Of a stretch of DNA of 64,000 bases, positions 1 to 34,373 are shown in pieces; positions within the stretch are counted from its first letter, which is position 1, and each line of letters opens with the position of its first letter. The notes under the pieces were generated by a model. It was not told the origin of the DNA and did no database searches. It was given only the letters and a program-made list of their open reading frames with translations. The position numbers and the translations under genes are program-made. The DNA is taken from positions 1 to 64,000 of the IMG/VR virus record IMGVR_UViG_3300050132_000038. One strand, 5' to 3'.

Positions 1-1921
1 CTTCCAGTGCGGCACCAATGCCCCATGTTATGCCGCCCATCATCTGGGAGTGAGCAGTCTTCTGGTTTAATATACGACCTACATCATAGACGGCTACAAC
101 CCGTGGAATACAGATGGTCCCCAGATCTGCATCGACATGAGCTTCTACGAAGACTGCACCGAATGAATGGAAGGAATACTCGTCTCGTTCATCACCTGTA
201 TTCGCATTGGCCGATGCTTCGATAGGTGTGCCTGATCTCCCCATTACGGCCTTAACTGAGTCACGTCGAACTGGGGACTCCTTACTGATAATCCACCCGT
301 TCTCGATTACTACCTCAGATTTGCCATACACAGGAGACTTCTTATCCTTAACTGCCAAGGCAATAAGCTTCTGTCGGGCCTTCGCACATGCAGAATAAAC
401 AGCAGGGCTAATAGAGGCAGCAGACTTAGATCCACTAGCATCGGGAGACTTAGGCAGTGCAGAGTCACCTAATAAAAATGTCACGTTGTCCACAGTGAAG
501 CCCAACGCCTGTGCAGCAACCTGAGTCATAACAGTGTAGGTACCGGTTCCTAAGTCATGAGTACCAGATCCCACAACTGCAGTACCGTCTGTACGTATGA
601 TCACCTTAGCTGAGGCATCACCTCGATTACCAGGATAGGTAGCTGTTGCCATACCCATACCGATCAGCTTACGGCCCTCACGCAGAGTCCTAGGCTTCGG
701 CTGCCGTTTATCCCATCCGAACTTTGATGCCCCTATGGAGTAGCATTCATTGAGAAACTTACTAGACCAAGGGTTGCCACTATCAGGATCCTTCTCTGCG
801 TAGTTCTTAAGCCTAAGCTCTACTGGACACATCTTTAGGGCATACGACAATTCATCCATAGCTGATTCCAGTGCGAATGATCCCGTGATTGCCCCAGGTG
901 CTCGCATGAACGTTGGATTGCCGATGTTAAGCTTTACTAATCGGTGAGCAGTTACTTGATTGGGTACATCATAGAGAATGCGGGAGATCTCACAGCACGT
1001 CTCAGTCCAATCCTCTAGCATAGAGGTGGTAGAGTAGCTAGTGTGGGACATTGCAGTAAGCACGCCGTCTTTGGTAGCCCCTAGCTTAACGTGCTGCTCA
1101 GTATTCGGTCTATATCCGACAGGGCCAAACATCTGAGGGCGAGTCACCACTAAGCGTACAGGCTTGTCCAACATCTTCGCAACTGTAGCACATAGAATAA
1201 CGTGCGACCACGTTGAACCCTTGCAGCCGAAACCACCCCCAAGGTACGGAGATAGTTCACGCACGTCCGAGGCCTCTATACCGAGGGCCTTAGCGATCGC
1301 CTTCTTCGCATCATGCACCCCTTGAGTGGTATCGTGCAGAACTAACTTCTGTCCGTCCCACTGGGCTAAGGTAGCCAACGTCTCGATCGGATTGTGATTC
1401 TCGATGGGTGTGGTGTACACTTCATCTATCTGTACATCACTTTCCTCAAACCCTTCCTCGAAGTCACCACGTTTAGTATCGGGTGGCACATCAAGTTGGG
1501 GTGGAGGAGTGTACCCGTCTGCACTATCAAATTCGAGTACAGCTTCTTCCTCAGTATAAGTAATACTAAGTTTGTTAGCAGCTTCAGTTGCCCGCTCTAG
1601 GGTAGTGGCGACCACAACTGCGATAGGTTGATTGCTGTAGTGCACCTTATCGTCCTGACATAGGGACAACATACGGGTAGCAGGTAACACTACTTCCTCA
1701 ATCTTCGGTAGCTTAGGTGCGTTAGCGTGAGTCAATACGAGGAGTACGCCTAACATCTTCTCGACTTCTTCTGCATCAATCTTAACTGTACCACTAGCAA
1801 TAGTAGAGGTTACCATTACCGCGTGTACCAAGCCAGGGACCTTGAAGTCAGCAGCATAGGGAGCCGCACCTGTGACCTTTAGTACCCCATCAGTACGATT
1901 TATTGGTTGGCCGATAATCAC
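1..1921 (-). CDS. paoC: Xanthine dehydrogenase-family molybdopterin-binding subunit (PaoC/YagR-like), partial: runs off the left edge
   Basis: Absent from the ORF track, consistent with no in-frame stop before the window edge. GTG start at 1921 overlaps the paoB stop (GTGA). N-terminus reads MIIGQPINRTDGVLKVTGAAPYAADF; the same frame at the edge reads KTAHSQMMGGITWGIGAALEE. Both are XdhA/PaoC motifs. Confidence 0.9.
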   Translation of the reverse strand, partial: MIIGQPINRTDGVLKVTGAAPYAADFKVPGLVHAVMVTSTIASGTVKIDAEEVEKMLGVLLVLTHANAPKLPKIEEVVLPATRMLSLCQDDKVHYSNQPIAVVVATTLERATEAANKLSITYTEEEAVLEFDSADGYTPPPQLDVPPDTKRGDFEEGFEESDVQIDEVYTTPIENHNPIETLATLAQWDGQKLVLHDTTQGVHDAKKAIAKALGIEASDVRELSPYLGGGFGCKGSTWSHVILCATVAKMLDKPVRLVVTRPQMFGPVGYRPNTEQHVKLGATKDGVLTAMSHTSYSTTSMLEDWTETCCEISRILYDVPNQVTAHRLVKLNIGNPTFMRAPGAITGSFALESAMDELSYALKMCPVELRLKNYAEKDPDSGNPWSSKFLNECYSIGASKFGWDKRQPKPRTLREGRKLIGMGMATATYPGNRGDASAKVIIRTDGTAVVGSGTHDLGTGTYTVMTQVAAQALGFTVDNVTFLLGDSALPKSPDASGSKSAASISPAVYSACAKARQKLIALAVKDKKSPVYGKSEVVIENGWIISKESPVRRDSVKAVMGRSGTPIEASANANTGDERDEYSFHSFGAVFVEAHVDADLGTICIPRVVAVYDVGRILNQKTAHSQMMGGITWGIGAALE

Positions 1922-2892
1922 TGTACACCTCTAGCTGTGTTAATGGCGCGCACGATGGAACGTTGTGCTAACCTTACTTTGAATCGGTTATCCCTAGCAG
2001 GCTTTGCTTTCAGTAGTTCAGCTACGGATGCTTCCTTTAGCGCGTCTGAAGTTAGCTCCTTACCAATCAACAGCTTCTCTGCTATTGACGCTCTCCACGG
2101 CTTTAACGCAACACCACCTAAAGCGATCCTAATATCTTGCACTACATTACCTTCCATCTTTAACGCTACTGCAACAGAGACCACAGCGAATGCAAAGCTA
2201 TGACGATCTCGGACTTTCAAATAGTGAACGTGTGTGAACTCATGGGGCGGGAGGTCTACGGAGACTATGAGCTCTCCTTGCTGTAGAACGGTATCAATCT
2301 CGGGGGTATCCTCAGGGAGACGATGGAAGTCAGTGATTGGAATACTGCGTTTGCCTTTAGGCCCTACCACCTGCACAACTGCATCTAGCGCAGCTAATGC
2401 TACACTCATATCAGATGGGTTGGTGGCAATACACTGAGGGCTAGAACCAAAGATAGCCATGTTGCGACTAGCACCATTAATAGCAGCACAGCCACTACCG
2501 GGTTCGCGCTTGTTGCATTCGCTAAACATCGTATCGTAGAAGTAACCACAACGAGTACGCTGCATCAAGTTACCACCAGTGGTTGCCATGTTACGCAACT
2601 GAGCGGATGCACCCGATAGAATAGCCTGGCTTAATAGGGAATACTTAGTACGGACTACCGGATGGTTGGCGGCATCGCTATTGCGAACTGTTGCCCCAAT
2701 ACGGAACCCACCGTTAGGGAGCTCCTCAATCTTGTCTAGTCCTGGTACGTGAGTAATGTCAACAAGGCCGGACGGATGTTCTACGCAGCCCTTCATCAAG
2801 TCCAGGAGGTTAGTGCCTCCTGCAATGAATGTACCGTTAGCACTCAGTGCGCTTTGAATATCTGTGGCTCGAATGTAGGAGAAGTTTTCCAT
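1918..2892 (-). CDS. paoB: FAD-binding subunit of PaoABC-like aldehyde oxidoreductase (PaoB/YagS-like)
   Basis: FAD motifs IAGGTNLLDLMK and GASAQLRNMATTGGNL; four-Cys insertion (RTRC..CNK..SGC..QCIA) typical of the PaoB [4Fe-4S] insert. Confidence 0.92.
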   Translation of the reverse strand: MENFSYIRATDIQSALSANGTFIAGGTNLLDLMKGCVEHPSGLVDITHVPGLDKIEELPNGGFRIGATVRNSDAANHPVVRTKYSLLSQAILSGASAQLRNMATTGGNLMQRTRCGYFYDTMFSECNKREPGSGCAAINGASRNMAIFGSSPQCIATNPSDMSVALAALDAVVQVVGPKGKRSIPITDFHRLPEDTPEIDTVLQQGELIVSVDLPPHEFTHVHYLKVRDRHSFAFAVVSVAVALKMEGNVVQDIRIALGGVALKPWRASIAEKLLIGKELTSDALKEASVAELLKAKPARDNRFKVRLAQRSIVRAINTARGVQ

Positions 2893-3375
2893 CTAGGTCT
2901 CCGATACTGCTTTGATCGCCTTAACGATATTGGGATATGCTCCACAGCGACAGAGGTTGCCGCTCATACGCTCTTTGATCTCGTCATCCAGTGAGGCACC
3001 TGAGACAGCACTCAGTTCCCCACGGTCTAATTCATTTAGCAATGCTGAAGCTGAACACAGTTGACCTGGGGTACAGTAGCCGCATTGGAAAGCATCGTAG
3101 TCGAGGAAGGCTTGTTGAAGATCGCTGAGTTTGTCACCTTCAGCAAGTCCCTCTACAGTAGTGATCTCTTGACCGTCGTGCATAACGGCTAACGTTAAAC
3201 AGGAGTTGATACGCCGACCGTCAACCAGTACAGTACATGCTCCACACTGTCCTCTGTCGCAGCCTTTCTTTGTTCCCATCAACCCGGCACGTTCACGGAT
3301 TGCATCGAGCAGCGTTACCCTGGGTTCAAGATCACCAGAGTACCGTTGCTCGTTTATATTCAGTGTAATTTTCAT
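2893..3375 (-). CDS. paoA: 2x[2Fe-2S] subunit (PaoA/YagT-like), no Tat signal peptide
   Basis: GTKKGCDRGQCGACTV, FQCGYCTPG and MSGNLCRCGAY motifs. Confidence 0.93.
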   Translation of the reverse strand: MKITLNINEQRYSGDLEPRVTLLDAIRERAGLMGTKKGCDRGQCGACTVLVDGRRINSCLTLAVMHDGQEITTVEGLAEGDKLSDLQQAFLDYDAFQCGYCTPGQLCSASALLNELDRGELSAVSGASLDDEIKERMSGNLCRCGAYPNIVKAIKAVSET

Positions 3376-3387
3376 AGTAAATAGAAG

Positions 3388-3419
3388 AGCCCCATTGAAG
3401 TATAATTTTCAATGGGGCT
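3388..3419. terminator. Inverted-repeat hairpin, likely intrinsic terminator at the end of the late block
   Basis: AGCCCCATTGAA / TTCAATGGGGCT perfect 12-bp stem with T-rich flanks. Confidence 0.65.
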
Positions 3420-3437
3420 ATTTGGTTACCCGGTTAG

Positions 3438-3788
3438 TTACAGTTTTGTGAGATCCTCTTTGTACTTGCGGAGATCCTGCTCAAGCTCAGAAACTTCTAC
3501 TTCATCCGCTTCTGGATCCCGTGTCAGCTGCTTGAGCCGTGTTTGAATCTTCTTGATACGTTGCTGCACTGTAGTCTTGCGATCAGCAGGGGCCTTAGAT
3601 ACCTTCGGCTTTGCTGGGTTTTTTGGTTTAGGTGCTGGTTTTCCGGCGTCCTTAGCAAGCTTCGAGTCGGGATGACGCTTAAGGTACTCTCTTTGCATCT
3701 CCGGATTGAGAGAAGTGAACCAGGATGGGGCTGCGACTACTTCCGTAGTTTCCATCAGCCGCGCTGCTGCGTTAAGTTGAATCTTCAT
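3438..3788 (-). CDS. Hypothetical basic protein with N-terminal LNAAxRL tag and WF..HP.SK.A motif
   Basis: MKIQLNAAARL; WFTSLNPEMQREYLKRHPDSKLA; coiled-coil-like C-terminus. Confidence 0.75.
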   Translation of the reverse strand: MKIQLNAAARLMETTEVVAAPSWFTSLNPEMQREYLKRHPDSKLAKDAGKPAPKPKNPAKPKVSKAPADRKTTVQQRIKKIQTRLKQLTRDPEADEVEVSELEQDLRKYKEDLTKL

Positions 3789-3806
3789 ATTAGTAGCCCT
3801 AGTTGA

Positions 3807-4565
3807 TTACGCAGTCGTGCCTTCTTCCACCTGGCGCCGAATTTCTTCTAAATAATCCGGAGCATAGCTGTACAACTTCGACCAGTACTCAATGGCCTGG
3901 GTCTGGTCCGCACGGCTAATGTTAGCCTTCACCATAGCACGACTAAACGATTTGGGGATTGGTACCTGCGAGATAACCGTCACCATATCATAATCAACAA
4001 CGGCAGCAGTTTGGGTAGTAGACGACACCACCTTAACTTGCTTATCGTTAGAAGCCACTACGAAACCGTGATCCATGTCACCCGACTTCGAGACAAACGA
4101 GACGAACTCACCTGAAGCAGCCTTAGCGATCTGAAGGCTACGCAATGCAGGAATGTCCGACCGGCGATGCACCGAAGCATTAACCAATTCCGACAGGTCC
4201 TCGTGACCATGACGTGCAAGGAACTTACCAGCCTTGCCCTCACGAATTTCCCACAGCGACTTGTCTGCATCATCCATCATAATGTTGGACGACATTACCT
4301 TATAGGATGCCCGCAACTCTTTATCAGAGACAACCCGCACTTCCTTGTTAGAACGAACGAACCCAACAGCTACACCAGCTTTGACGATACGGAAGCTATC
4401 TTCAACGGGAGCAGCCAGGTTGTTGAACTTATGTTGGAGAGCCGCACGAATGTCTTCCTTTGTCTGCTTACCAGTGAACGAGATCATCACCTTAGCCAGC
4501 GTCTCGCTCTTCATCCGGAAGTCGGTAATGCTTACAGTCTTTGCGTAGTCCATAATGCTGTTCAT
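3807..4565 (-). CDS. Putative virion structural protein
   Basis: 252-aa ORF with an AAGGA RBS, in the structural block; function not recognised. Confidence 0.6.
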   Translation of the reverse strand: MNSIMDYAKTVSITDFRMKSETLAKVMISFTGKQTKEDIRAALQHKFNNLAAPVEDSFRIVKAGVAVGFVRSNKEVRVVSDKELRASYKVMSSNIMMDDADKSLWEIREGKAGKFLARHGHEDLSELVNASVHRRSDIPALRSLQIAKAASGEFVSFVSKSGDMDHGFVVASNDKQVKVVSSTTQTAAVVDYDMVTVISQVPIPKSFSRAMVKANISRADQTQAIEYWSKLYSYAPDYLEEIRRQVEEGTTA

Positions 4566-4648
4566 GATTTATATCCTTAGTTGTGCAGCAACTTTGTTGT
4601 GAAAGAAAGTGTGAAACAGTAGTGAACCTCTACGGGTCGGTACGGCGG

Positions 4649-4867
4649 TTACTTAGTCTTCTTGGCCTTACGATTGTCTTCTCGCATCTTTTTCATCTTT
4701 TCTTGTAGTTTCTGTAGTCCGTCTCTAGCTGCTACTCCACCTCTACCCATACTGATCAGTTGCTTAGTAGTGGCGATTTTGTTCTGAAGCTGCTTTATCT
4801 CAGTGTCAGAATGTTCCGCTGCAGTAACTTCTGTAAGTCGGGCTGCTGCGTTAAGTTGAATCTTCAT
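4649..4867 (-). CDS. Small basic protein with LNAAxRL tag
   Basis: MKIQLNAAARLTEVTAA; the first 26 nt are identical to those of 3438..3788. Confidence 0.7.
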   Translation of the reverse strand: MKIQLNAAARLTEVTAAEHSDTEIKQLQNKIATTKQLISMGRGGVAARDGLQKLQEKMKKMREDNRKAKKTK

Positions 4868-4949
4868 TTCTAATCCTTTAATTTTTTGGTAATGGTACAG
4901 TTCTGCCAGCTAATGAATGTTTAGAATCACTACAGTACTGAATCGTACC

Positions 4950-5558
4950 TTAGTCCTCCTGAAGCCCTTCTAGCTTATCGGACAATTCTTTCATCTGATC
5001 TTTGAGCTTCTGGGGTACATTCTTTCCGTACCCCTTCATCTCCTTCCGCAGCTTAGTACGCTTTCCTTGGAGATCCTTAATCTTACCTTCCTTAGACTTA
5101 AATTTGAAGGGTAGCTCTGGTAGCTCGCCCTTCTTGCCTATGTCAGTAAGCTCCAGGGGATCAAGTAGGCGACGAATAACTTCATGGCCTCCCTTCTTCA
5201 CCAGCTCCTTGGCCTTCTTCTTAGCTGCGTCCCCACCCTTATGAAGGAGATACTTAGTTAGACTCTTCTCCTCGTCTGGATTCTTCTTTGGTTTAGGCTT
5301 TGTTGTATCGTCTGAGTCCTCGTCTTCACCGCTCGGGCCTTCCAGAAGGGCCTTCGGAGTTTTCAGAGTCTTGGGCGGAGGTTTAAGGCCATCCTTTAGT
5401 TTCTTGGGCTTATGCTTGGATGTATCGTCATCCTCTCCGTCGTAGCCCATAGCGTATTTGCTATCGGGATGCTCCTCAATGTATTCTTCTTTCTGGTCCT
5501 CATCTAGGGCATCCCACCAGTTAGCCAATAACCTAGAGGCAGCTTGGAGCTTAATCAT
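4950..5558 (-). CDS. Charged protein with tag variant and WW..HP.SKYA motif
   Basis: MIKLQAASRLLANWWDALDEDQKEEYIEEHPDSKYA. Confidence 0.72.
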   Translation of the reverse strand: MIKLQAASRLLANWWDALDEDQKEEYIEEHPDSKYAMGYDGEDDDTSKHKPKKLKDGLKPPPKTLKTPKALLEGPSGEDEDSDDTTKPKPKKNPDEEKSLTKYLLHKGGDAAKKKAKELVKKGGHEVIRRLLDPLELTDIGKKGELPELPFKFKSKEGKIKDLQGKRTKLRKEMKGYGKNVPQKLKDQMKELSDKLEGLQED

Positions 5559-5574
5559 TCTAAACTCCTAGGGT

Positions 5575-6081
5575 CTATGCATCTACAAGGTAGTCATAGT
5601 TCCACGTAATAGACAGGGTAACAAGATTCGATGCGGTACCGTCCATTGCGTAGTCTGCAATTGTTTCCGGCCACATACCATAGACGTTAACAGTCTTCAC
5701 TACGTTAGGGATCGAGTTGTAAACCACGATCTGGCCGTTCACCTTATAAGCGGAAGCCAACGTTCCACTATTGTTCACCCATGAACGGGCACTCTCACGC
5801 CAGTTAATGAAGGAGGTACGGGTTAGGTAGTCCGAACCTTCCATGAACACTGATTCAAAGGTGTGCGTATAAATAGCACGACCTGCGTATCGAAGTTCCA
5901 CACCGTGCAAGGCTACAGTCACAGGGTCCATAGCAGCACCTGGCAAAGCAGTAGACTGGCAGCGATAGGTAAGCTGTCGAGTATCAGCTGAGCCTGGGAT
6001 GGCAGGCAAAAAGAGGTCGTACTCCCAGCTTGTCGCCGGATCAGCAATAGACTGCACGTTAGCTAAAGAAGTTCTAGCCAT
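5575..6081 (-). CDS. Tail tube protein (T4 gp19-like)
   Basis: 168 aa, just downstream of the sheath; STALPG, WRE..R.W, YGMWP and final TWNYDY pattern typical of tube proteins. Confidence 0.8.
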   Translation of the reverse strand: MARTSLANVQSIADPATSWEYDLFLPAIPGSADTRQLTYRCQSTALPGAAMDPVTVALHGVELRYAGRAIYTHTFESVFMEGSDYLTRTSFINWRESARSWVNNSGTLASAYKVNGQIVVYNSIPNVVKTVNVYGMWPETIADYAMDGTASNLVTLSITWNYDYLVDA

Positions 6082-6103
6082 AATTAACTCCTAGTTATTT
6101 AAT

Positions 6104-6112
6104 ATGAAATTG
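6104..6112 (-). promoter_or_regulatory. Putative late promoter motif CAATTTNAW, upstream of the tail tube
   Basis: One of nine copies upstream of late-region gene starts (see findings). Confidence 0.55.
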
Positions 6113-6116
6113 ATTG

Positions 6117-6977
6117 TTAGCTAAGAGGCTGATTGGCTACGTTCCACAGATGTAAGGCGTCAGCATCACCCAGTACCTCCTCAGGTTCCTCGTCTGCATC
6201 ACTAAGGATTTGAACCTCGCCCTCTTCAGAAGGTTCACCTAGCATCTCATGACTTTCACAACCCGTATCGAACGTAGCCGCCAGGTAGTTCTCGTCCTCA
6301 TCACGCGAGACCGGGAACTTAACATAGGTCGACCCAGGAGGGGAGTCCACGTCCACAGTGGAGTCTGCTTCCACAACCGAAGCCTCATTCTGATACATGA
6401 TAGACTGCTCATCTAACAAGCGGTCTAGCATTGCTTTAGGCTTAGACTTACGTTTAGCTGCTGGCTTCTTTTTAGTAGCAGGCTTTCTCTTAGCACCTCT
6501 CACTACATCCGGCTGGTCCTCTAGGTTAATGTCAATAGAGGGTATGCTCGACTCAAACATATCGAACGGATTGTCCGTAGTGGAGTCCGCCTCTACTGCT
6601 CTGGGGTTAGAATCCTCGACACCCTGGAGTAGTGGATCCGTGGAAACCGAGTTATCACCCATAGCCCCGTGCTTCTCAATTGCCGCCCGAAGCCGGGAAG
6701 CCAACAGCTTAGCCATAGGGAACGCAGTACCTGATTCTCTAGTGCTTGTACGTGGAGGATTTGCATAGCCGTCACCTAACTCTTCGGCGGCAAACATACC
6801 ACTTGAGGTGTCTCGCTCGTCCCTAGAGCTTAGGGTATCTGCAGCAGTTACTGGATTGGTTTCAAGGAAGTCTTTAACTGCCACCTCATCTTCCTCTTGG
6901 TGCTCGTCTATGTCTGAGGCTTTAACTCTAGTCCCACTGGAGGCTAACAATCGTGATGCTGCGTTTAATTTGAACAT
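6117..6977 (-). CDS. Acidic putative head/internal protein with LNAAxRL tag
   Basis: MFKLNAASRLLAS; second degenerate copy AKLLASRLRAA; many V-x-A-[ASD] sites. Confidence 0.7.
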   Translation of the reverse strand: MFKLNAASRLLASSGTRVKASDIDEHQEEDEVAVKDFLETNPVTAADTLSSRDERDTSSGMFAAEELGDGYANPPRTSTRESGTAFPMAKLLASRLRAAIEKHGAMGDNSVSTDPLLQGVEDSNPRAVEADSTTDNPFDMFESSIPSIDINLEDQPDVVRGAKRKPATKKKPAAKRKSKPKAMLDRLLDEQSIMYQNEASVVEADSTVDVDSPPGSTYVKFPVSRDEDENYLAATFDTGCESHEMLGEPSEEGEVQILSDADEEPEEVLGDADALHLWNVANQPLS

Positions 6978-7037
6978 TTGTTCTCCTAGGGGGATCTACG
7001 CACACTGTACTAGCTATGCGTAGCCTTTACTACTAGG

Positions 7038-8975
7038 TCAGGACGGGGCGACCTGGGCTAAAGTTTCTGCGAAACTGACACCCTGCTGGCTGATGGCTAC
7101 CGTCAACTGGATAATATGCGTCGGTATGGTAGGGATAATAATTACGGTCACGTTCCTAATCCCGCTGTTAAGATCCTGGGCCGTATTATTACTACTATCC
7201 GACACCACATCGAAACTAGAGATTGCTCTCGCATTTTGAAGTGCCAAAAGGTAGGCGCTACAGCTACCTACAATCTGGTTCCCTAAGAACTGGTCATTGG
7301 GCTCTTGCAGTGAGTATAACAAGAACGAGTACAGTGACGTCTTCAACACGTTCACAATACGCCGCACCGACACCCACGACAATGCGGAGAACTCAGTACT
7401 CAACGTCTGTTGTTCCCACAGCGCAGTACCCGAACCAACGAAGGTTTGAGTATAGTTAACCTGCGCTTGGAACAACGAGTTCATCTCACCCGCGTCATAC
7501 GTATAGCGTGTACCCAGCACGTTCACAATACCACGATTCAAACCTGCGATACTGTAACTAGGGTTAGCCACTCGATCGGTACGAGCACACAGTGCAGCCG
7601 CCCAACCACTAAACGGTACATATTGTTGCTTACCGTTAATGGTATCCGCCTCCAACATATCGGGACTAAACAACGCGCTATACGTGGAGTTCAGATTCAA
7701 CTGCAGGTTACGGTAATCAATAGCCGATTGGAAAGCCTGACTTGCACTAGGTACATCGAGCAAGGACACGGAATCCCCACGCGACTGAGCCAACGAATCC
7801 ATAGCCCGTTGGACCGTCGGATCACTGTGACCTGAGTTCAACAAGATATTGATTGGGTACAACTGCTTGTTACTAAACGTAGCCCAACCCGCTGCAACCT
7901 CATACGATGTAGGGAGTGACCCGTTGTTACCCCCTGCCATATTCATAATAGGCACTGTCTCTACCGTAGGAACAGTTAGCAACGCCGGTACATTCGATGT
8001 AACCTGAATCCATTGGGAGAACGGATTAATTCGCTGCTCCAACTCTGCTTCCATCCCAGTCGGGTCTGTCATATCCGTTAGAGAACAATTGAAGTTCTCA
8101 ACTGCATACGTGCTAGACTGTGCAGTGTTAAACACATTAACTGAGAAGAAAGGATTAGCTGGAGGTAATTTAGCAGGACTGGTGATCGGGAACACGGTGG
8201 TACTAGCCATTACTGCACCAGTATCAGTGAACGTCGTAGTAGCCGCACCTACAGTAGCCAACAGTCCAATGGTACCTGCAACACGTCCGTACACATTGTA
8301 ACCAGTAGCCCCAATAACTGGGTTCCAGGTCAACGTTACCTCGTTGGTTGTTGTCCCTGCTGCAATAACCACAGTAACAATGTTAGTGGCCAGCGTTCCA
8401 CCTGCACCAGAAATAGCAGACACCTGGTAGGAATACGTTGAAGCCGCCAACATACCACCAGTAGTAGACGAAGTAGCAGCTAGTCCCGTGGGTGGGTTAA
8501 TATTGTTAGAGGTAATGGAAATCGCAGTGTTATCACCGTACTGTCCTGGGCCTAGTGCTGGGTAGAACAAAGCAATTGCCTCGTTACCAGTACCAGTAGG
8601 AAGTAACGCCATCCAATCAGGCTGGGTAGGATCAGCTACACCTCCAGTGATCTGGGTTAGGTACGTTTCCATACCGTCCGTCCACATAAGAACCGCAGCG
8701 TACATCGCACTGGGATCTACTACTCGAAGACCCCATAGTTGGGAACCCTGACTAAAGTAATCCAGTCCGCAATAAACGTCGAATGACACCTGCGCATTCG
8801 GATTACCGTACTGGTTTAGATAAGACTGTGTGTTAGTAATTAAGGTTGGTACAACAGGCCCTTGGTTCGCCACAATAACCTGAGCAACTACAGAGGTAGA
8901 TGCAGAGACGATTACCTGTGACAAATTAATTTCCTGGACCAGCACTGCTGAACTTTGGTCTGCACTAATTGTCAT
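7038..8975 (-). CDS. Tail sheath protein with inserted Ig/FN3-like domain
   Basis: N-terminal V.VQEI.LS and GP..PTLITN..Y..YG; C-terminal IAGLNRG, VSVRR and SNNT..D motifs of contractile sheaths; insert VTLTWNPVIGATGYNVY. Confidence 0.9.
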   Translation of the reverse strand: MTISADQSSAVLVQEINLSQVIVSASTSVVAQVIVANQGPVVPTLITNTQSYLNQYGNPNAQVSFDVYCGLDYFSQGSQLWGLRVVDPSAMYAAVLMWTDGMETYLTQITGGVADPTQPDWMALLPTGTGNEAIALFYPALGPGQYGDNTAISITSNNINPPTGLAATSSTTGGMLAASTYSYQVSAISGAGGTLATNIVTVVIAAGTTTNEVTLTWNPVIGATGYNVYGRVAGTIGLLATVGAATTTFTDTGAVMASTTVFPITSPAKLPPANPFFSVNVFNTAQSSTYAVENFNCSLTDMTDPTGMEAELEQRINPFSQWIQVTSNVPALLTVPTVETVPIMNMAGGNNGSLPTSYEVAAGWATFSNKQLYPINILLNSGHSDPTVQRAMDSLAQSRGDSVSLLDVPSASQAFQSAIDYRNLQLNLNSTYSALFSPDMLEADTINGKQQYVPFSGWAAALCARTDRVANPSYSIAGLNRGIVNVLGTRYTYDAGEMNSLFQAQVNYTQTFVGSGTALWEQQTLSTEFSALSWVSVRRIVNVLKTSLYSFLLYSLQEPNDQFLGNQIVGSCSAYLLALQNARAISSFDVVSDSSNNTAQDLNSGIRNVTVIIIPTIPTHIIQLTVAISQQGVSFAETLAQVAPS

Positions 8976-9004
8976 AATGTGTTTCTCCTAATGGTCGTTA
9001 GCAG

Positions 9005-9370
9005 TTAAGTCTTAACTGCTGGGGAACTGACGGTCGGAGCCGTGGGTGTAGCTTTAGTAACTGCCGGTGTTGCTGTAGCAGGTTTGACAGGACTACCAAT
9101 GACCTTCTGTGCAGCCATACGACCTGCCACATTAGACTTCGACGTTTTAGCTACTGGTACAGCAGGGGCTTGCACAGTAGCACTATCAACTAACTTGATG
9201 TTCTTGCCGTACAGAGCCATCCAATTGTTATCGATTGTACAGTCAGTAGGCATTGGTGTGCGGCCTCGCCCTGGCACCCGTACGCTCGTACTAACAGGTT
9301 TGCCTTTAACCTGTTTGATGACCCCTACTTGTAAGGGCACCCGTCCGATGTTCATGATAATGGTCGTCAT
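9005..9370 (-). CDS. Hypothetical tail-region protein with Pro/Ala/Thr-rich tail
   Basis: ORF with GGAGG RBS between the sheath and the putative tail completion gene. Confidence 0.55.
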   Translation of the reverse strand: MTTIIMNIGRVPLQVGVIKQVKGKPVSTSVRVPGRGRTPMPTDCTIDNNWMALYGKNIKLVDSATVQAPAVPVAKTSKSNVAGRMAAQKVIGSPVKPATATPAVTKATPTAPTVSSPAVKT

Positions 9371-9384
9371 TCGAGACCTCCAGA

Positions 9385-10059
9385 TTAATCTGTTGTTGGA
9401 AAAGTGAAAACTTGTGAGCTTATCAGCTTGGGATTAACGCCACCGACCGACGATAGAACGTTGATCGTATTGACCTTGCCTCCCGAGGCTAGGATAGGCT
9501 CACTTATATACCCATGCAATGTTAAATTTGCGGTGATAACGTACGCAGATTCAGACTCGACAATGTTGGGTAGTGTAGGGATTGTCACAGACTCAGGCAT
9601 CGTCAACCAGGTGTTGAATGCTAAACGTCCATAGTTGATAGTAGATTTTAGATACCCACCTCGATACGCTAGAACCCATCGTCTAGCAAAGGCCAGTACA
9701 GATCCCTGTTCTACTGAGTCGAATTTGTTAGTGGTGTACGTTATAGCCAACTCGAAGTTAGCAGGCATTACCCGAACCTGCTGCACCGTAGAACCTGAAT
9801 CAACATTAACGATCAGCCCCTTACGTAACATCATCTGCGTACTGTAGGTCTCCTTATTAGCCGCAACACTCTGGATCTCAAAGGTTGCATAAGGATACTC
9901 AAGGGGCTTACCCTCACCAAATATTCTATCTAATACCTTCGTCTTATCTACGCTATTGGTGTACACGCACCTACAGTTGAAGACTTGCTGCCACCTCTGC
10001 TGGAAGGCACTCAGCGTCATCGAGTCTATAGGTACCAGTGTTACTCCTGCTGAAGCCAT
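9385..10059 (-). CDS. Putative tail completion/terminator-like protein
   Basis: Position between the capsid and sheath genes, size, and a PLEYPYATF..beta-rich pattern; assigned mainly by synteny. Confidence 0.45.
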   Translation of the reverse strand: MASAGVTLVPIDSMTLSAFQQRWQQVFNCRCVYTNSVDKTKVLDRIFGEGKPLEYPYATFEIQSVAANKETYSTQMMLRKGLIVNVDSGSTVQQVRVMPANFELAITYTTNKFDSVEQGSVLAFARRWVLAYRGGYLKSTINYGRLAFNTWLTMPESVTIPTLPNIVESESAYVITANLTLHGYISEPILASGGKVNTINVLSSVGGVNPKLISSQVFTFPTTD

Positions 10060-10090
10060 GGGCCCTCCAGATTCAGGGGTTGAAATGGAG

Positions 10091-10135
10091 AGAGGGGTAT
10101 GCGGGACGGCTTTTGCAACCGGCGCATACCCCTCT
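10091..10135 (-). terminator. Long hairpin, probable terminator/processing stem after the capsid operon
   Basis: AGAGGGGTATGCG / CGCATACCCCTCT 13-bp stem plus an inner stem. Confidence 0.6.
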
Positions 10136-10161
10136 ATTAAGGTAGATTACTTACCTAGCTG

Positions 10162-10602
10162 TTACTTACGCTGCTTTGCTTTAGCTGCGGTACGCTGCGT
10201 CATAGACGACAGGACCTTAGCCAACGATGCTGCGATCTCTGCATCTTCGTGGCCGATAGCTTCGTCTTCCACTTCTTCTGGTTCGCCTTCAAACCCTTCA
10301 GCTTCAGCATCCACTTCTTCGCCACCCATTTCGTCTTCGTCGTCACCGACCAGACTCTTAATCGACTCATCTTCCAGTTCGTCTTCAGCAGCCCGAACTT
10401 GTTTCGGTTTAGCCTTAGCAGCTTGCACCTTAGCTTGGGTGTAAGCTTGGTGGTTCGATGCTTCGATAATGTTAATGGCTGCAACAATGTCCGGCATCTT
10501 CGTTGCTTTCATCAGAAACTTGGAAGCCGTTACTGGCCGACCTTTCAGGAGTTGCGTGGCTGCCAAGGCCAAACAGTCCAAAGCTTTGTTATAAGTTTTC
10601 AC
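10162..10602 (-). CDS. Putative head-associated protein (acidic C-terminal half)
   Basis: Directly downstream of the major capsid gene; GAGGA RBS; several V/I-x-A-[AS] sites. Confidence 0.55.
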   Translation of the reverse strand: MKTYNKALDCLALAATQLLKGRPVTASKFLMKATKMPDIVAAINIIEASNHQAYTQAKVQAAKAKPKQVRAAEDELEDESIKSLVGDDEDEMGGEEVDAEAEGFEGEPEEVEDEAIGHEDAEIAASLAKVLSSMTQRTAAKAKQRK

Positions 10603-10681
10603 TTTTCTATGTCCTCTACAAGATGAATTCTGATTAGGGAGGCTAACTTACTAGCCTCACCGTACTCAACAGTTAGACCGC

Positions 10682-11770
10682 TCAGGCGATTCTGTAGCCC
10701 TTAGCAACCGAGCGACTGTTTGCAACTGCCACAGCGATCGACTCTTGGATGATCCAGCCACGACCGCTGACCTTCTCAACACCTGCGCTAATCGGCTCCG
10801 ACGAAATACCACCGCGATCCGAGTAAGCACCATGGTTCAGTGCATCCGAGATAACGAAGAATTCACCTTGGTTTAGCACCTTGTGTTCTGGGTGACGATA
10901 TGCGTCCGACGTAACGGTACACCCATAGATCACACCGAGTTCACCAGTCAACAGCAACTCGTGACGAGCAACCGGGTCGATTGCGTGGTAGAATTCCGAG
11001 TTACCGATAATGTCGATGTACAGATCGGTTGCCATCAACACGTGCGGCGTTTTCAGGCCCCACTGCGACACGTTCACCATAACTTGGGCAAACGTATACG
11101 GCGTCAGTTGACCCGAGATAATCGACAGCGGATTATCAATACCGACGATAGCATTAACTTGGTTGTACCACAGACGGTCTTCGCCGACCATGATAGCTTC
11201 CGTCGCTTCAACGTATTTCTCTTGAAGCACATCCCCGGCGGACTGGTTCAACTCGTTGGTCGGGATATACGGACGGGTAACGATCTGCAATTCCGGAGGA
11301 GTCAACCAACGGTCGCGCGTGATCTGCGAGTAAACCTTGGTCGGGCCAGTTGCATACGTAGCCGTAACGTTCTTGTTCCGCAACGGGAAACGAGGAATCG
11401 AGCCTTGTTCGACTGGAATCTTCGTCAAATACTTACGCATGAAACCTTGACGGTTTGCGGTAAGGTACAACGACTCAGCCATACGTTCGCCCAGAACGCG
11501 GTGTGCATCCGGATCATTGAAACTTGCTTGAATAAGCTCACGGCCAATCTTAGCGCCTTGTTCCGACGAGGCAAACACTGCATCGCTAACGATCTCGCCA
11601 CGCGAAGCAGCTTCGATAAACTGACGCTGCTTGTTCAACAGGTCTTGTTTAGACGAAGCATTGATTTCGCCACCAGCACCAACTGCGTAACCGTTTGAAC
11701 CCGGAAACTTATATTGGGAAGCTGCAACCATAGGCGTCTTGGCTGCTCGGACTTTGATTTTTTCACGCAT
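10682..11770 (-). CDS. Major capsid protein
   Basis: 362 aa after the protease-scaffold-decoration genes; HK97-like motifs (EAIMVGEDRLW, GELGVIYGCTV..D, GWIIQE..AV..SRSVAKG). Confidence 0.85.
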   Translation of the reverse strand: MREKIKVRAAKTPMVAASQYKFPGSNGYAVGAGGEINASSKQDLLNKQRQFIEAASRGEIVSDAVFASSEQGAKIGRELIQASFNDPDAHRVLGERMAESLYLTANRQGFMRKYLTKIPVEQGSIPRFPLRNKNVTATYATGPTKVYSQITRDRWLTPPELQIVTRPYIPTNELNQSAGDVLQEKYVEATEAIMVGEDRLWYNQVNAIVGIDNPLSIISGQLTPYTFAQVMVNVSQWGLKTPHVLMATDLYIDIIGNSEFYHAIDPVARHELLLTGELGVIYGCTVTSDAYRHPEHKVLNQGEFFVISDALNHGAYSDRGGISSEPISAGVEKVSGRGWIIQESIAVAVANSRSVAKGYRIA

Positions 11771-14267: not shown

Positions 14268-15896
14268 TTAATAACCAATAGTGAAGCGACGACTCTTCTT
14301 AATCTGTCGTACTTCTTTCTTATACTGGAAGTGAAACTGTACTTGCCTAATAGCACTCTGCCACACATCACTAGAGTACTGTGAGTTGTCGGCGTTAGGA
14401 TCAGCTTTGTAGATAAGCTGAGGGGGAACGTTCCACCATTGATTGCTGTTAGGATCAACGATGACTGCGTACTTAGATGTTTGCTTATACGCAATGACCC
14501 CATTCACTACCTTAGAGCCTCGTTCCAAAGCAATGCGAACTACACGCCCTGGAGCAAGATCCCACTCCGGAGTTAACGCCAACTCTTTCTTAGTCTCCTC
14601 GGCTTTCTCCCGTTGTTCCTTAACTTTAACCTGCTCTTCCTCTGAGAGATAGATGTCTGCGTTGTTGTGGTCATACCTAGCAGGGTTCAACCCAACTTTA
14701 CGCATCCAGTTCTTCCAGTGATGCCCGTGTCCCTGCTCCGTGTTATCAACTACACGATCAATCTCAGACACAGCTTGGTGGCAACACTCATGGAGGAAGA
14801 TTTCCACGAATACCGGAAGTGGGGCATTGAACAACTTGGGTGCGATCTTAAGCTCCCTAGTAGAAGCCCGCCAGTAGCCACGAGTACGCATTCTTGCCAC
14901 GTTCTTTATGTAGCTAATGTTAGGCGGCTTCATCTGGCCTCCGAACTTATTCTCATTCAGGAAGTTCCACAGGTTACGCATCCAAAGCAAACCACCTTGA
15001 GAGCCTGCGACGCCACCAGTCTTAGAATAGAAGTCACCCAACCTAATTGGGATTGCTATATGAGGGACCTCGGTGTTGTCCTTCTTCAGCAATATCTTAT
15101 CGGGCTGTGTTAGTATATCCTGCGGTTGCCTAGGAGCTTCTGGCGCAGGTCGAACTACGGGTACTTCCGGCTTGACCACAACTACTGGAGGAGCCTTAGG
15201 AGCTTCTGGAGGCTGCGGTACCTTACGCTCATTGTCGAATTTCTTTTCGTCTAAGAGTAGCTCAGATGCAGGTTGTTGTAACTTACCCTTAACCTGTGCT
15301 GTAGTCTTAGTGTACGTAACTTCTAGGTCGTCTTCCTTAGAAGACAGGAGACCCTCTTCCACTTTAACAAAACCTAATCCCTTGAGCAGCTTAGAGATCG
15401 GTACTGAGTTCTCCGTGGTGAACGTAAACTCAATAAACCCTAGAGGTTGCTTACTAGTGAACTGAGGTTTACCAGGGATCGCAGATTTGACAGCCGCCAG
15501 AATCTTACCCCAGCGTGGTACAGATTGACCGAGCAGCACAATCTCAGTATCCGTTACCAGAAGAGGCCACCCAAACTTATTATGGGTGTACACCTTCTTA
15601 TTGAACAACCAGGGCGCGTACCCTAACTTTGAGAGAGCAGAGGTGATCGGGGCTTTGAGATTAATGCCCTTCGGGAACAGGCCAAACCAATGACGGTTGC
15701 CTACTTTCCTCCAGTCGTCAATCTCTATACCCCTAGCACGTAACTGCTTACTAAGCTCTATACTAAACTTATTAGCCTGCTCTGGGCTATCGAAGTTACG
15801 CGCCGTGATCTTCTTCGCCGTACCTAGTGCCTCTTGTAGTCGCTTAGAGGCGCCTAGGCTTCCTGAGCAAACATAGCAGGCGCATTGCATCGACAT
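14268..15896 (-). CDS. SprT-like zinc metalloprotease domain protein
   Basis: IFLHECCH (HExxH) followed by GHGHHWK..M, preceded by TRGYW; long N-terminal region and Pro-rich linker. Confidence 0.78.
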   Translation of the reverse strand: MSMQCACYVCSGSLGASKRLQEALGTAKKITARNFDSPEQANKFSIELSKQLRARGIEIDDWRKVGNRHWFGLFPKGINLKAPITSALSKLGYAPWLFNKKVYTHNKFGWPLLVTDTEIVLLGQSVPRWGKILAAVKSAIPGKPQFTSKQPLGFIEFTFTTENSVPISKLLKGLGFVKVEEGLLSSKEDDLEVTYTKTTAQVKGKLQQPASELLLDEKKFDNERKVPQPPEAPKAPPVVVVKPEVPVVRPAPEAPRQPQDILTQPDKILLKKDNTEVPHIAIPIRLGDFYSKTGGVAGSQGGLLWMRNLWNFLNENKFGGQMKPPNISYIKNVARMRTRGYWRASTRELKIAPKLFNAPLPVFVEIFLHECCHQAVSEIDRVVDNTEQGHGHHWKNWMRKVGLNPARYDHNNADIYLSEEEQVKVKEQREKAEETKKELALTPEWDLAPGRVVRIALERGSKVVNGVIAYKQTSKYAVIVDPNSNQWWNVPPQLIYKADPNADNSQYSSDVWQSAIRQVQFHFQYKKEVRQIKKSRRFTIGY

Positions 15897-15904
15897 ACTT
15901 CCTC

Positions 15905-16723
15905 CTATTCAGAACTAGCGAACTCATGTACCTCATCGGATAGAGCCTGCGCCCAGGCCGGGTCCTTCACTATAGAAACCTCGATCGGGCTGATGCCATG
16001 GGCATTTAAAAAGCTTAAATGGGAGTCACCATTCCAGTCCTTGTGGGTTTTCCAGTTCACATCCTTAATGCTAGAGATGTGCTGACAGCAATACTTAGAA
16101 GTACACTCTGTTCCGCAGTACCCACAAGTAAAGTAATCGACTAGTGCCCCCATAGAGTAGGTGTTGATCTCTTTGGTTAGTACCTTCTGTGCTACGTCAG
16201 GATACTTAGTCTTGTCGATAGCTAAGAGTCCCATCACCTTCCATAGCTTACCATCCCCGTAACCACTTACTTTATGGAAGCTAGCATCGAGGAGAACTCC
16301 GTAGGCCTTCTCGTGATCCTCGTTGTCGTGCTCAAGATGTACAGGGCAACCGGCCCATGCTTTGTAAGCCATACGGGATGTAGGTGGTGGCATGAACCTC
16401 GCTAGTTCCGAGGTCGGAAACGCAATACCGTTCCTATTAGGAAGCTCCGATGGACAGACTACTGTAGAGACGATTATGTAATCGGAAATATTCGGGCTTA
16501 TTTTATAGACTTTAGCCGCAAACGGTAGCCACGTCTCATAGTCCAGCTGAGTAAGGAGCGACTGATCCTTCTCTGCATCCATCACCTTCTCAGTGTGCCC
16601 GATGCTATCAACTACTTTGGTATTGAGAGCATCACCTAAACTAGTGTTAGCACTCAACCTCTTATAGACACCTGCGTCCTCTCGTTTAGCGGATGCCTCC
16701 GCGTATGCTTTTGGGATCCTCAT
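15905..16723 (-). CDS. Prohead maturation protease
   Basis: PNRNG..F, VHLEHDN (catalytic His candidate), YSMG (catalytic Ser candidate), CGYCG zinc ribbon, EVSIVKDPA; lies upstream of scaffold and capsid. Confidence 0.8.
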   Translation of the reverse strand: MRIPKAYAEASAKREDAGVYKRLSANTSLGDALNTKVVDSIGHTEKVMDAEKDQSLLTQLDYETWLPFAAKVYKISPNISDYIIVSTVVCPSELPNRNGIAFPTSELARFMPPPTSRMAYKAWAGCPVHLEHDNEDHEKAYGVLLDASFHKVSGYGDGKLWKVMGLLAIDKTKYPDVAQKVLTKEINTYSMGALVDYFTCGYCGTECTSKYCCQHISSIKDVNWKTHKDWNGDSHLSFLNAHGISPIEVSIVKDPAWAQALSDEVHEFASSE

Positions 16724-28037: not shown

Positions 28038-28567
28038 GCTTTCACCTTAAAGTAAAAATTCCCTCTAAGTTTATTTATAGGTTTACCTTTTACAATAGGT
28101 ATTGTATCGGTACCCCAAGAGAAATCCACAGGTACCTGAAGATGATCTAGTAGTTCCACTGAATAGTACTTAGATACGGATCTCCAGGTTCTAACTGCCA
28201 TTATACCTATAATGCTTGAACTTTGAAGTTCACCTAGAACATGAATAGCTGCTAGATATAGTACAAGACCTAAATGTCGTCCCCTGTATTCTTCTTCGAT
28301 AAAAACACTGATAACCATGTTGCCTTTGGCCGTCGTAGACAATATTCCAATTATTCTATCTCTATCTTTTAAGAAAAAGTCACGAGAATAAGTCAACTTC
28401 AGGTAGTATAAGGACAAACCTTCTTTTGTGCCAAGTGGTACAGCAGGCTTAGTTTTCAATCGTTTTTCAAGAAACTCTACGTCTCGATCAAATTCTAGTT
28501 GAGTGTAGTTCTCTCGCATCCTAATAGGCATAGACTCTACGAGCCTAGAGGCTGCATTTAATTGCAT
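28034..28567 (-). CDS. GNAT-family acetyltransferase with LNAAxRL tag
   Basis: MQLNAASRLVES; acetyl-CoA motif VFIEEEYRGRHLG..LY; visibly more AT-rich than its neighbours. Confidence 0.72.
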   Translation of the reverse strand: MQLNAASRLVESMPIRMRENYTQLEFDRDVEFLEKRLKTKPAVPLGTKEGLSLYYLKLTYSRDFFLKDRDRIIGILSTTAKGNMVISVFIEEEYRGRHLGLVLYLAAIHVLGELQSSSIIGIMAVRTWRSVSKYYSVELLDHLQVPVDFSWGTDTIPIVKGKPINKLRGNFYFKVKA

Positions 28568-33170: not shown

Positions 33171-33740
33171 CTAATCAAAGTGGGTAAGTCTGTACGCCGC
33201 GCTCATCTTCAGAGGGTCGACGCCATTCTTCTTCGCGTTTTCTATTCTGGAGATTTCCATCTCAACTGAGCGCATCGACTGTGGATCAGCTAGCAATGAT
33301 TCTAGCCCAGGGTGTAGGGGATCAGGCCACTCATTATACGGCACCCATACGTTACCTGCGGTTTCCTCAGCGAATTCAGGTGGAGAATTAATCTCGAATT
33401 GCTTAGGAATGACTACGAGATTGTTAGCGTACTGAAATCCGCGGTCTGCATCATAGTACGTCATGAGAGGGAATATCTTCATCTCACCTGTGTATCCTGT
33501 TTCCTCTCTAAGTTCCCGTTTGAGTGCGGTGAACGTTTCCTCGTTACCGTCGATAGAACCTCCCCAACAACCGTACGTGTTTGGCGTATCCGAAGTAGTG
33601 CTACGGAGTTGGAAACTGAAGTTCAGTGTGTCTGCAGCTAGGAGTAGGCAACCAACCGCGTAGTGGTACCCCCTCACCCCAGGGACCCATTCTTCACCAT
33701 CTTTGTGTGCTAGTAGTCGTGTAGCTGCATTTAGTTTCAT
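33171..33740 (-). CDS. Nudix hydrolase with tags at both ends
   Basis: Nudix box GGSIDGNEETFTALKRELREETG; starts MKLNAATRLLA, ends LKMSAAYRLTHFD. Confidence 0.88.
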   Translation of the reverse strand: MKLNAATRLLAHKDGEEWVPGVRGYHYAVGCLLLAADTLNFSFQLRSTTSDTPNTYGCWGGSIDGNEETFTALKRELREETGYTGEMKIFPLMTYYDADRGFQYANNLVVIPKQFEINSPPEFAEETAGNVWVPYNEWPDPLHPGLESLLADPQSMRSVEMEISRIENAKKNGVDPLKMSAAYRLTHFD

Positions 33741-33749
33741 TGTCAGGTC

Positions 33750-34373
33750 CTAAGAAGTCGGGTCCACTATGACAACCTGCCTTCCGCGCATCATGAAGTT
33801 GTCCTTGTGGATGTCCGGGTAGCCATCACCAGTGTTGTACTCAGCTACAAGCCACTCGGCGAATTGTTTTAGATTCGGATCTAAGGGTGCGCCACGCGAA
33901 GTCTTTATCTCACATAGGCGGGTCCACAGCGGACTAACCTTAGACTGGTATACCGAGAGGTTTTTCTGGTGCGGTACAAAGCATATAGTCTCCAGTCCAT
34001 AGATGAACTTCTTGAACTGGGCTTCTGACATAGGAGTCAGTTTCTCCATGAAGACCACGTGAAGTCCTGTCTTATCTGAGTTCCAAATGTGGCCTTTGTA
34101 CTTCGGATCAGGATCCAGACCGTGTTCGTCGTGGTGCTCGCCCTTGATCTTCAATAGATACGGATTGTGGGGATTAGCCTGACAGAACTTCGTATACGAT
34201 TCGAACGCAGGGTCGTGAGTGAACACCTTCACCATCGTCGTCGGATCTGTTAGATGCTGAAAGACAAAGGCGTGAGAGCCCTTTGCTACAGGCTCTATAC
34301 CTTGTGACTTCAAGTCCTTCAGATACTCTGTCAAGGTGACTGCGATTAACCTAGTAGCTGCGTTTAACTTCAT
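33750..34373 (-). CDS. Protein-kinase-like (PKL fold) enzyme with LNAAxRL tag
   Basis: Gly-loop AKGSHAFVF, VKV lysine, FMEKL hinge, DIHKDNFM catalytic loop, IVDP. Confidence 0.78.
   Translation of the reverse strand: MKLNAATRLIAVTLTEYLKDLKSQGIEPVAKGSHAFVFQHLTDPTTMVKVFTHDPAFESYTKFCQANPHNPYLLKIKGEHHDEHGLDPDPKYKGHIWNSDKTGLHVVFMEKLTPMSEAQFKKFIYGLETICFVPHQKNLSVYQSKVSPLWTRLCEIKTSRGAPLDPNLKQFAEWLVAEYNTGDGYPDIHKDNFMMRGRQVVIVDPTS

Follow-up and report, generated by a model that had tools for sequence, protein, structure and literature searches.

A predicted PaoABC-type molybdo-flavoenzyme operon carried by a lytic-type jumbo phage from peat

Does a three-subunit redox-enzyme operon at the very end of an assembled virus sequence belong to the virus, and if it does, what might the virus gain from it? 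The question is raised by the window (the whole stretch of DNA analysed here, 64,000 nucleotides), which is bases 1-64000 of a single 218,861-bp contig, IMG/VR record IMGVR_UViG_3300050132_000038, and which begins with the operon paoABC. Read on the minus strand, paoA (3375..2893) encodes a 160-amino-acid (aa) subunit with two [2Fe-2S] sites (Pfam Fer2 and Fer2_2), paoB (2892..1918) a 324-aa flavin adenine dinucleotide (FAD) subunit with a [4Fe-4S] insert (FAD_binding_5 and CO_deh_flav_C), and paoC (1921..1, with a GTG start codon at 1921) the molybdenum-cofactor subunit (Ald_Xan_dh_C, MoCoBD_1 and MoCoBD_2); all seven Pfam domains score above their gathering cut-offs. The genes are closely coupled, in that the TAG stop of paoA abuts the ATG of paoB and the paoB stop overlaps the paoC start by 4 nt (GTGA). 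The original prediction had described a translationally coupled three-subunit molybdo-flavoenzyme operon with these frames, oriented like the virion genes; the open reading frames (ORFs) and Pfam domains agree with that description, and the tail tube, sheath, major head and portal protein genes do lie on the same strand.

The residues on which such an enzyme depends are all present. In an alignment with E. coli and Paraburkholderia PaoA the eight [2Fe-2S] cysteine ligands are invariant in the phage copies (this phage and the three sisters described below), as are the four [4Fe-4S] cysteines of PaoB (pattern RTRC...CNKR...GSGC...QC). The catalytic glutamate of PaoC, E693 in the motif GVGEIG (E692 in E. 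coli, E1261 in bovine xanthine oxidase), is kept in every phage copy, and the motifs GGGFGxK, MRAPG and GTGTYT are also conserved. With three cofactor modules, eight cysteines and the catalytic glutamate in place, the predicted enzyme is assigned to the xanthine-oxidase family, and from the conservation of its ligands and catalytic residue PaoABC looks intact and functional.

Only 640 of the 730 paoC codons lie inside the window; the last 90 are at contig bases 218463-218734, as the following shows. The first 127 bp of the contig are exactly its last 127 bp (genome 1-127 and 218735-218861). IMG/VR classes the record as having direct terminal repeats (CheckV completeness 100%), and the 127-bp repeat is the k-mer overlap left by a circular assembly at k=127 rather than a physical terminal repeat. 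When the overlap is trimmed the circularised genome is 218,734 bp long, and paoC crosses the junction and ends at a normal stop to give a 730-aa protein. Because the contig ends overlap, the window edge is an assembly breakpoint and not a host boundary, and paoC is not truncated. A 730-aa PaoC (P0001) is also in the protein database, on a second record of this genome that is equal in length but opened at another point, and a 22-kb piece of that record (L001) is identical to our circularised sequence across the junction. Logan contigs from three peat-metagenome runs, which come from different samples and studies, span window positions 1-6000 and cross both junctions with no differences; in each run the coverage is in one 54.5-kb piece (depths 39x, 115x and 30x) that reaches ~8 kb or more past base 1. 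Phage genes resume beyond paoC, where a peptidase gene and two small genes (both below) are conserved in the sister phages. The original prediction had stated that it would fail if host chromosome lay to the left of the window or if paoC were disrupted further on; the DNA found there is phage DNA and paoC is complete, and with phage genes on both sides, a complete circular genome, agreement of the assemblies across the whole 3.4 kb and phage-like codon usage the operon is phage-borne and neither host flank nor chimera. The reported lack of an integrase also holds, since no tyrosine integrase was found in the phage genome, and the window has no tRNA.

Could paoABC even so be a non-functional passenger, that is, a recently acquired stretch of host DNA, the flank of a prophage or a chimeric assembly, as yet undegraded? 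Three points would fit such a reading: the weak initiation context of paoA behind a terminator-like hairpin, the lack of maturation genes in the phage (both below), and the fact that xanthine dehydrogenase genes in existing phage records are host flanks. The Acinetobacter phage Ab105-3phi "xanthine dehydrogenase" (L090, KT588073.1, bases 1-11450), for example, has GTP cyclohydrolase, trpC and trpD genes for neighbours where a partial prophage record ends, and is host chromosome rather than a phage gene. The composition of the peat phage operon argues the other way. Its GC content is 0.49 and its third-codon-position GC content (GC3) 0.45-0.47, both within one standard deviation of the 199 other phage ORFs, and the codon-usage likelihoods of the pao genes (z = -0.6, -0.3 and +0.1) make them indistinguishable from other phage ORFs. 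Bacterial genomes of the donor type are much richer in GC than the phage (~49%). Because codon usage is phage-like and the donors are only ~62% identical, the transfer appears to be old. Besides these differences, the circular genome and the identical assemblies already described, four diverged phages have kept all three ORFs and all of the ligands, and polymorphism in the operon is biased toward codon position 3, as follows.

Three of the 120 best PaoC database hits are not bacterial; these (P0058, P0070 and P0072) are encoded on phage contigs L005, L004 and L088, respectively. L004, L005 and L088 share the gene order sheath, leader protein, tail tube, small leader proteins, 253-aa core protein, and then PaoA-PaoB-PaoC, papain-like peptidase and two small conserved genes. 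Among the four phages the Pao proteins are 61-83% identical, which is inside the range of the flanking phage genes (sheath 81%, tube 78-84%, 252-aa protein 74-81%, peptidase 57-66% and a 286-aa protein 40-54%), and the closest bacterial proteins are 58-63% (PaoC) and 64-71% (PaoA) identical. These phages were found by protein searches followed by gene-context look-ups; a megablast search of GenBank phages with 21.6 kb of the window gave no match, a scan of IMG/VR with PaoC peptide patterns gave no relatives, and a sheath-based scan of viral contigs gave only a 4.9-kb fragment that stops short of the pao position.

In a maximum-likelihood tree of 92 rows the phage PaoC proteins form one clade (support 100) inside a Paraburkholderia/Trinickia/Caballeronia clade (100), and in a reduced PaoC tree with all four phage copies the supports are 99 (phage) and 100 (Burkholderiaceae); these are Shimodaira-Hasegawa-like approximate likelihood-ratio test (SH-aLRT) values from quick searches. 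In a PaoB tree this clade is recovered too, though weakly supported (65). In both PaoC trees the phage proteins thus fall inside Burkholderiaceae PaoC; their branching point varies between the two (basal to the three genera, or following the split of Caballeronia), and the phage branches are several times longer than the bacterial ones. The simplest reading of these trees would be a single old capture from a Paraburkholderia/Trinickia/Caballeronia-like lineage, after which the operon was inherited vertically and evolved faster. At the 60-70% protein identity that separates the phage copies, synonymous sites are saturated, so ratios of nonsynonymous to synonymous substitution rates (dN/dS) between them were avoided and a strain variant from a fourth peat run (X4, ~8% different) was used instead. 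In X4 paoC, 33 of the 40 listed differences are at codon position 3 (p = 2e-10) and 4 change an amino acid. The operon is under purifying selection, and we regard the passenger explanation as very improbable.

What reaction, then, is the enzyme likely to catalyse? The solved relatives closest to all three subunits are the Methylobacillus aldehyde oxidase 5Y6Q and E. coli PaoABC 5G5G: PaoC matches 5Y6Q_C (1.1e-156, 527 bits) and E. coli PaoC 5G5G_C (7e-134, 451 bits) best, and the best solved relative of PaoB is E. coli PaoB 5G5G_B (1.5e-86). E. coli PaoABC (YagTSR) has the same domains as the phage operon in the same gene order, paoA-paoB-paoC, and its genes likewise overlap or abut; both have the catalytic glutamate, a pair of [2Fe-2S] sites and an FAD subunit with the unusual [4Fe-4S] insert. 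It differs in that the phage operon has no twin-arginine translocation (Tat) leader and no paoD, its PaoC is ~37% identical to that of E. coli and has a tyrosine in place of the active-site arginine 440 (R440), and it is virus-encoded. The Methylobacillus enzyme is the best solved match of PaoC and a strong match of the other two subunits (its small subunit is deposited with 162 aa, against 160 in the phage); unlike the phage copies it is a bacterial enzyme that falls outside the Burkholderiaceae clade holding them. The YagTSR-type operons of Paraburkholderia, Trinickia and Caballeronia (e.g. L006, CP136512.1) share with the phage the tyrosine at the R440 position and the 4-nt paoB/paoC overlap, and differ from it by a 244-aa PaoA with an SRRRFLQ Tat leader and by a MocA-type gene after paoC, both of which the phage lacks. 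The top-ranked NCBIfam families for the phage subunits are PaoA (NF008514) and PaoC (NF041671), and the equivalog cut-offs of both are missed (PaoA 233 bits against 322, PaoC 635 bits against 1180). Because of these scores and the R440 replacement, the predicted enzyme is classed as PaoABC-type, of the Paraburkholderia subfamily, and not as an equivalog of the E. coli enzyme.

At low pH, aromatic aldehydes are detoxified in E. coli by PaoABC, an enzyme that requires PaoD (PMC3958847, PMC2997495). The original prediction had listed aldehyde detoxification, purine recycling and a supply of reducing power as conceivable roles of the phage enzyme; of these the sequence favours an aldehyde substrate, and a preference for aromatic aldehydes would follow from its nearest characterised relatives. 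An alternative is that the true substrate is not an aldehyde, and is instead an N-heterocycle (a purine or nicotinate) or another small molecule, whose oxidation would serve nucleotide or NAD (nicotinamide adenine dinucleotide) economy or the destruction of a host defence metabolite. The family includes enzymes acting on purines, nicotinate, quinoline and 4-hydroxybenzoyl-CoA, which appear as more distant hits, the R440 replacement and the PaoC score below its equivalog cut-off would allow a different specificity, and NAD salvage is a function in which relatives of the phage invest, BcepSauron with its NAMPT and adenylyltransferase being one. Both of the characterised enzymes that come closest, by a wide margin, are aldehyde oxidases or oxidoreductases, however, with 527 and 451 bits against the far lower 208 bits for 4-hydroxybenzoyl-CoA reductase, and the tyrosine is common to the whole Paraburkholderia subfamily rather than specific to the phage. 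A non-aldehyde substrate is on this evidence quite unlikely, and an aldehyde is preferred below.

Can the phage mature the enzyme itself? No match to XdhC_CoxI, XdhC_C, NTP_transf_3 or MoCF_biosynth was found in the whole phage genome (controls were positive), and thus it has no XdhC/PaoD, MocA or MoCF-type gene. This bears out the expectation that a host-made molybdenum cofactor and an XdhC-type chaperone would be needed; with no maturation genes in the phage, maturation must come from the host. The major head protein is 75% identical to those of Burkholderia phages BcepSauron and BcepSaruman, 71% to those of Ralstonia phage phiRSL1 and Burkholderia phage BCSR5, and 60% to that of Achromobacter phage Motura, by which the phage is assigned to the BcepSauron/phiRSL1/Motura group. 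Because these relatives infect Burkholderiales, the host is probably a member of that order. Paraburkholderia and Trinickia genomes have 2-5 XdhC-family genes, with a MocA-like gene after paoC in the Paraburkholderia operon, and the E. coli operon carries paoD; E. coli PaoABC made without PaoD contains no cofactor and is unstable (PMC2997495).

Where in the infected cell would the enzyme act? In E. coli the signal on PaoA exports the whole trimer to the periplasm in folded form, with PaoB and PaoC hitch-hiking on it (PMC4273604). Nearly all bacterial PaoA proteins of this subfamily have a Tat leader (e.g. SRRRFLQSAAAAA), with the strict motif in 54 of 78 homologues and a looser twin-arginine (RR) form in most of the others. 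The Tat leader is gone in 4/4 phage PaoAs: window PaoA begins with the ferredoxin domain, at the position of E. coli PaoA residue 61, and has no RR motif, as had been claimed for it from comparison with E. coli PaoA. Since the Tat signal is deleted, the enzyme would stay in the cytoplasm of the infected cell rather than be exported, and in this phage it is most likely cytoplasmic.

In the sister phages something else stands in place of the Tat signal. L005 PaoA (L005:6464-7018) starts MKVQLNATHRL, L088 PaoA (L088:8440-9009) starts MKIELNATERL, and L004 PaoA has a degenerate leader, MKNQIKATEH. In the window an in-frame stop lies 12 codons upstream of the paoA ATG, and window PaoA is without this leader. 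About 19 unrelated phage proteins begin (M)K(I)QLNAAxRL, and 17 of these are in the virion-gene region; the leader peptide is conserved and its codons vary freely. The leader-bearing starts in the window are at 3788, 4867, 5558, 6977, 17023, 24575, 25826, 28567, 29980, 33740, 34373, 36848, 37780 and 38808 (all minus strand), and leader-bearing genes elsewhere in the genome are at 88063, 164896, 216744, 217148 and 218457. The carriers include the basic proteins that flank pao, among them a 116-aa protein (3438..3788, minus strand; leader MKIQLNAAARLME, motif EYLKRHPDSK), as well as a NUDIX hydrolase (33740..33171, minus strand) in the late region and, adjoining it, a T7 gp0.7-like protein kinase (34373..33750, minus strand). 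NUDIX hydrolases and gp0.7-like kinases are enzyme types usually linked to host takeover. Several leader proteins share the motif WW..L....QK.YI..HP.SKY and have Lys/Pro-rich tails, and the leader is often followed by L-x-E, which resembles T4 prohead-protease sites.

The leader may serve to target proteins to the virion or to mark them for processing. Like the T4 capsid-targeting sequence it is a short N-terminal peptide on unrelated late-gene proteins, several of them enzymes, that occurs with L-x-E and a head protease; it differs in having no sequence similarity to the T4 peptide and in being absent from window PaoA. A head maturation protease homologue of 272 aa (15905..16723, minus strand) is present; it has no Pfam match and is 73% identical to BcepSauron gp085, which is so annotated. 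It was found through that homology and not with the T4-type prohead protease profile PF03420, which is uninformative (its control has no match anywhere). The adjoining 542-aa ORF (14268-15896) has a SprT-like metalloprotease domain. Two further ideas about the leader were dropped. A strict back-translated leader pattern finds 1 site in BcepSauron, and looser inspection finds variants there on gp075 and gp077 only, which flank the tail tube, so that the set is not shared across the whole clade; and the Peptidase_C1 gene next to paoC was set aside as a leader-processing protease, since it is absent in BcepSauron and phiRSL1.

Could PaoABC then be, or have been originally, delivered by the virion? 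The Tat signal of the sister phages would have been replaced by the phage peptide, and the cofactor-loaded trimer would be packaged with the ~19 tagged proteins and injected into the next host, the leaderless window copy being a secondary loss. The leaders on L005 and L088 PaoA, and the degenerate one in L004, suggest this, as do the position of nearly all leader proteins in the virion region and the retention of the peptide through free synonymous variation. NUDIX hydrolases and gp0.7-like kinases are moreover typical of early-acting or injected enzymes, a head maturation protease homologue is present, L-x-E follows several of the leaders, and the hitch-hiking of E. coli PaoB and PaoC described above would let a signal on PaoA carry all three subunits. 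The leader role is putative, however, and our literature search found no virion proteomics for this clade; the BcepSauron leader, found only beside the tail tube, might just as well act in tail assembly or as some other signal, a trimer of 135 kDa would be much to package, and the in-frame stop upstream of its ATG leaves window PaoA leaderless. We judge packaging and injection of the sister enzymes unlikely, and virion delivery as an account of PaoABC in general equally doubtful. If it were true, the virus would deliver a ready-made redox enzyme, and the leader would be a new virion-targeting signal for phiRSL1/BcepSauron-like jumbo phages.

How might a cytoplasmic enzyme be expressed? A strong hairpin (3388..3419, minus strand), which combines a 12-13-bp GC-rich stem with a T-rich tail, stops 12 nt short of the paoA ATG. 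A hairpin is at the same place in 4/4 phages, and the hairpins of L004, L088 and the X4 variant are homologous to that of the window; the stem changes in X4 (CC/GG to TG/CA) and in L004/L088 are compensatory. It looks like an attenuator or terminator, or else an RNA-processing or stabilising element. Because there is no space for a promoter before paoA, the operon is probably reached by read-through from the late virion genes, at a reduced level.

The reading that we favour, and hold to be somewhat probable, is that paoABC encodes a late-expressed, cytoplasmic, host-cofactor-dependent aldehyde oxidoreductase that aids the phage in aldehyde-rich acidic peat. It would have arisen as follows: paoABC entered an ancestor of the subclade in a single capture, from a host lineage resembling Paraburkholderia, Trinickia or Caballeronia, and the operon came to lie at the end of the late virion block, directly behind a conserved core gene. 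Transcripts reading through from the late virion genes would pass the hairpin, which probably reduces or stabilises the message, and the subunits would assemble as an alpha-beta-gamma molybdo-flavoenzyme that is matured by the host, whose lineage has the required genes. Electrons would leave the molybdenum-cofactor site of PaoC, cross the two [2Fe-2S] clusters of PaoA and arrive at the FAD and [4Fe-4S] cluster of PaoB, the likeliest reaction being the oxidation of aldehydes to carboxylic acids. The benefit would be the clearing of toxic aldehydes from the infected cell over a long infection, and candidate substrates are lignin- or Sphagnum-derived aromatic aldehydes, which are common in acidic peat. 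What the enzyme oxidises, when and how strongly it is expressed, and what the phage gains from it are inferred.

Several points weigh against this reading. The missed equivalog cut-offs and the replacement of R440 mean that substrate preference may differ from that of the E. coli enzyme, whose own physiological electron acceptor is not known (PMC3958847). Acceptance of a phage PaoC, ~62% identical to the host type, by a host XdhC-type protein is uncertain, and the host itself is assigned indirectly, through phage relatives. Window paoA has no recognisable Shine-Dalgarno sequence and starts 12 nt past the terminator-like hairpin, so expression could be very low, and no RNA run is among the listed runs that hold the sequence. 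Finally, the phage leader on PaoA in the sisters hints that the ancestral role in the phage was not simply cytoplasmic.

Is there a precedent? We found no published description, in the literature searched, of a PaoABC or xanthine-oxidase-family enzyme as a phage module, in line with the original prediction, which was not aware of it as a described phage auxiliary metabolic module. A PaoC homologue was not found by tblastn against GenBank phages in the cultured relatives BcepSauron, phiRSL1 and Motura; the matches that this search did give (at most 37% identity, in unannotated faecal fragments and Acinetobacter prophage records) were rejected as precedents, the annotated one being the host flank described above. 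The operon lies inside a complete phage genome, its cellular origin is indicated by phylogeny, and it has four syntenic copies under purifying selection; on these grounds we classify paoABC as a genuine auxiliary metabolic operon of a lytic-type peat jumbo phage. Like known phage metabolic genes (cyanophage psbA, viral dsr/sox) it is host-derived, composition-matched, conserved and under purifying selection. It differs from them in having three subunits and five cofactor sites (molybdenum-molybdopterin cytosine dinucleotide, two [2Fe-2S], [4Fe-4S] and FAD), in needing a host chaperone pathway, and in that its targeting signal has been removed or replaced. Phage auxiliary metabolic genes usually encode single, self-sufficient enzymes. 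This enzyme would be useless without the molybdenum-cofactor, Fe-S (iron-sulphur) and chaperone pathways of the host, yet it has been kept through ~40% protein divergence, and that retention implies a real selective benefit of aldehyde (or related) oxidation in Burkholderiaceae infected in acidic peat rich in phenolics. It would add redox detoxification to the ways in which viruses influence peatland carbon turnover. That the Tat signal was lost, and in the sisters replaced, is a clear natural example of a virus re-addressing a captured enzyme, and the shared leader gives a handle on protein targeting in a poorly studied group of jumbo phages.

The genes around the operon are those of the phage group. 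Upstream of the 116-aa gene is a 252-aa phage-group core protein (phrog_17573; 3807..4565, minus strand) that is 43-60% identical to BcepSauron, BcepSaruman, BCSR5, phiRSL1 and Motura proteins and marks the upstream edge of an accessory island. Downstream of paoC, a papain-family Peptidase_C1 gene is present in 4/4 phages (L001:12746-13480; genome ~217.2-217.9 kb) and was not found in the cultured relatives BcepSauron and phiRSL1. Because the 252-aa gene is core to the whole group and the peptidase is absent from the cultured relatives, pao and the peptidase are assigned to one accessory island that closes the late block. The peptidase has its nearest phage homologues in Burkholderia phage FLC9 and in an uncultured phage of 595 kb, and one distant homologue is annotated as an endolysin.

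Beyond the 252-aa gene are two small leader-bearing proteins of 72 aa and 202 aa (4867..4649 and 5558..4950), the tail tube protein (5575..6081; phrog_45, 3e-25; Phage_TTP_2), the tail sheath protein (7038..8975; phrog_23, 8.5e-73) and the major head protein (10682..11770; phrog_2522, 1.6e-91), all on the minus strand; genes on the virion strand also include the portal, a large helicase and an NAD-dependent ligase. The tail-tube gene is split after about codon 20 in two of the sisters, by a ~340-nt insert in L005 (2564-3398) and by a ~1.7-kb insert carrying a DUF7487 ORF in L088 (3650-5896), which look like intron or homing-endonuclease insertions; the window tail-tube gene is uninterrupted. 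The stretch of lowest GC in the window (28034-28567, 0.33-0.43 per 100 bp) is a leader-bearing 177-aa gene with a weak match to GNAT acetyltransferases, and this gene may be a more recent acquisition.

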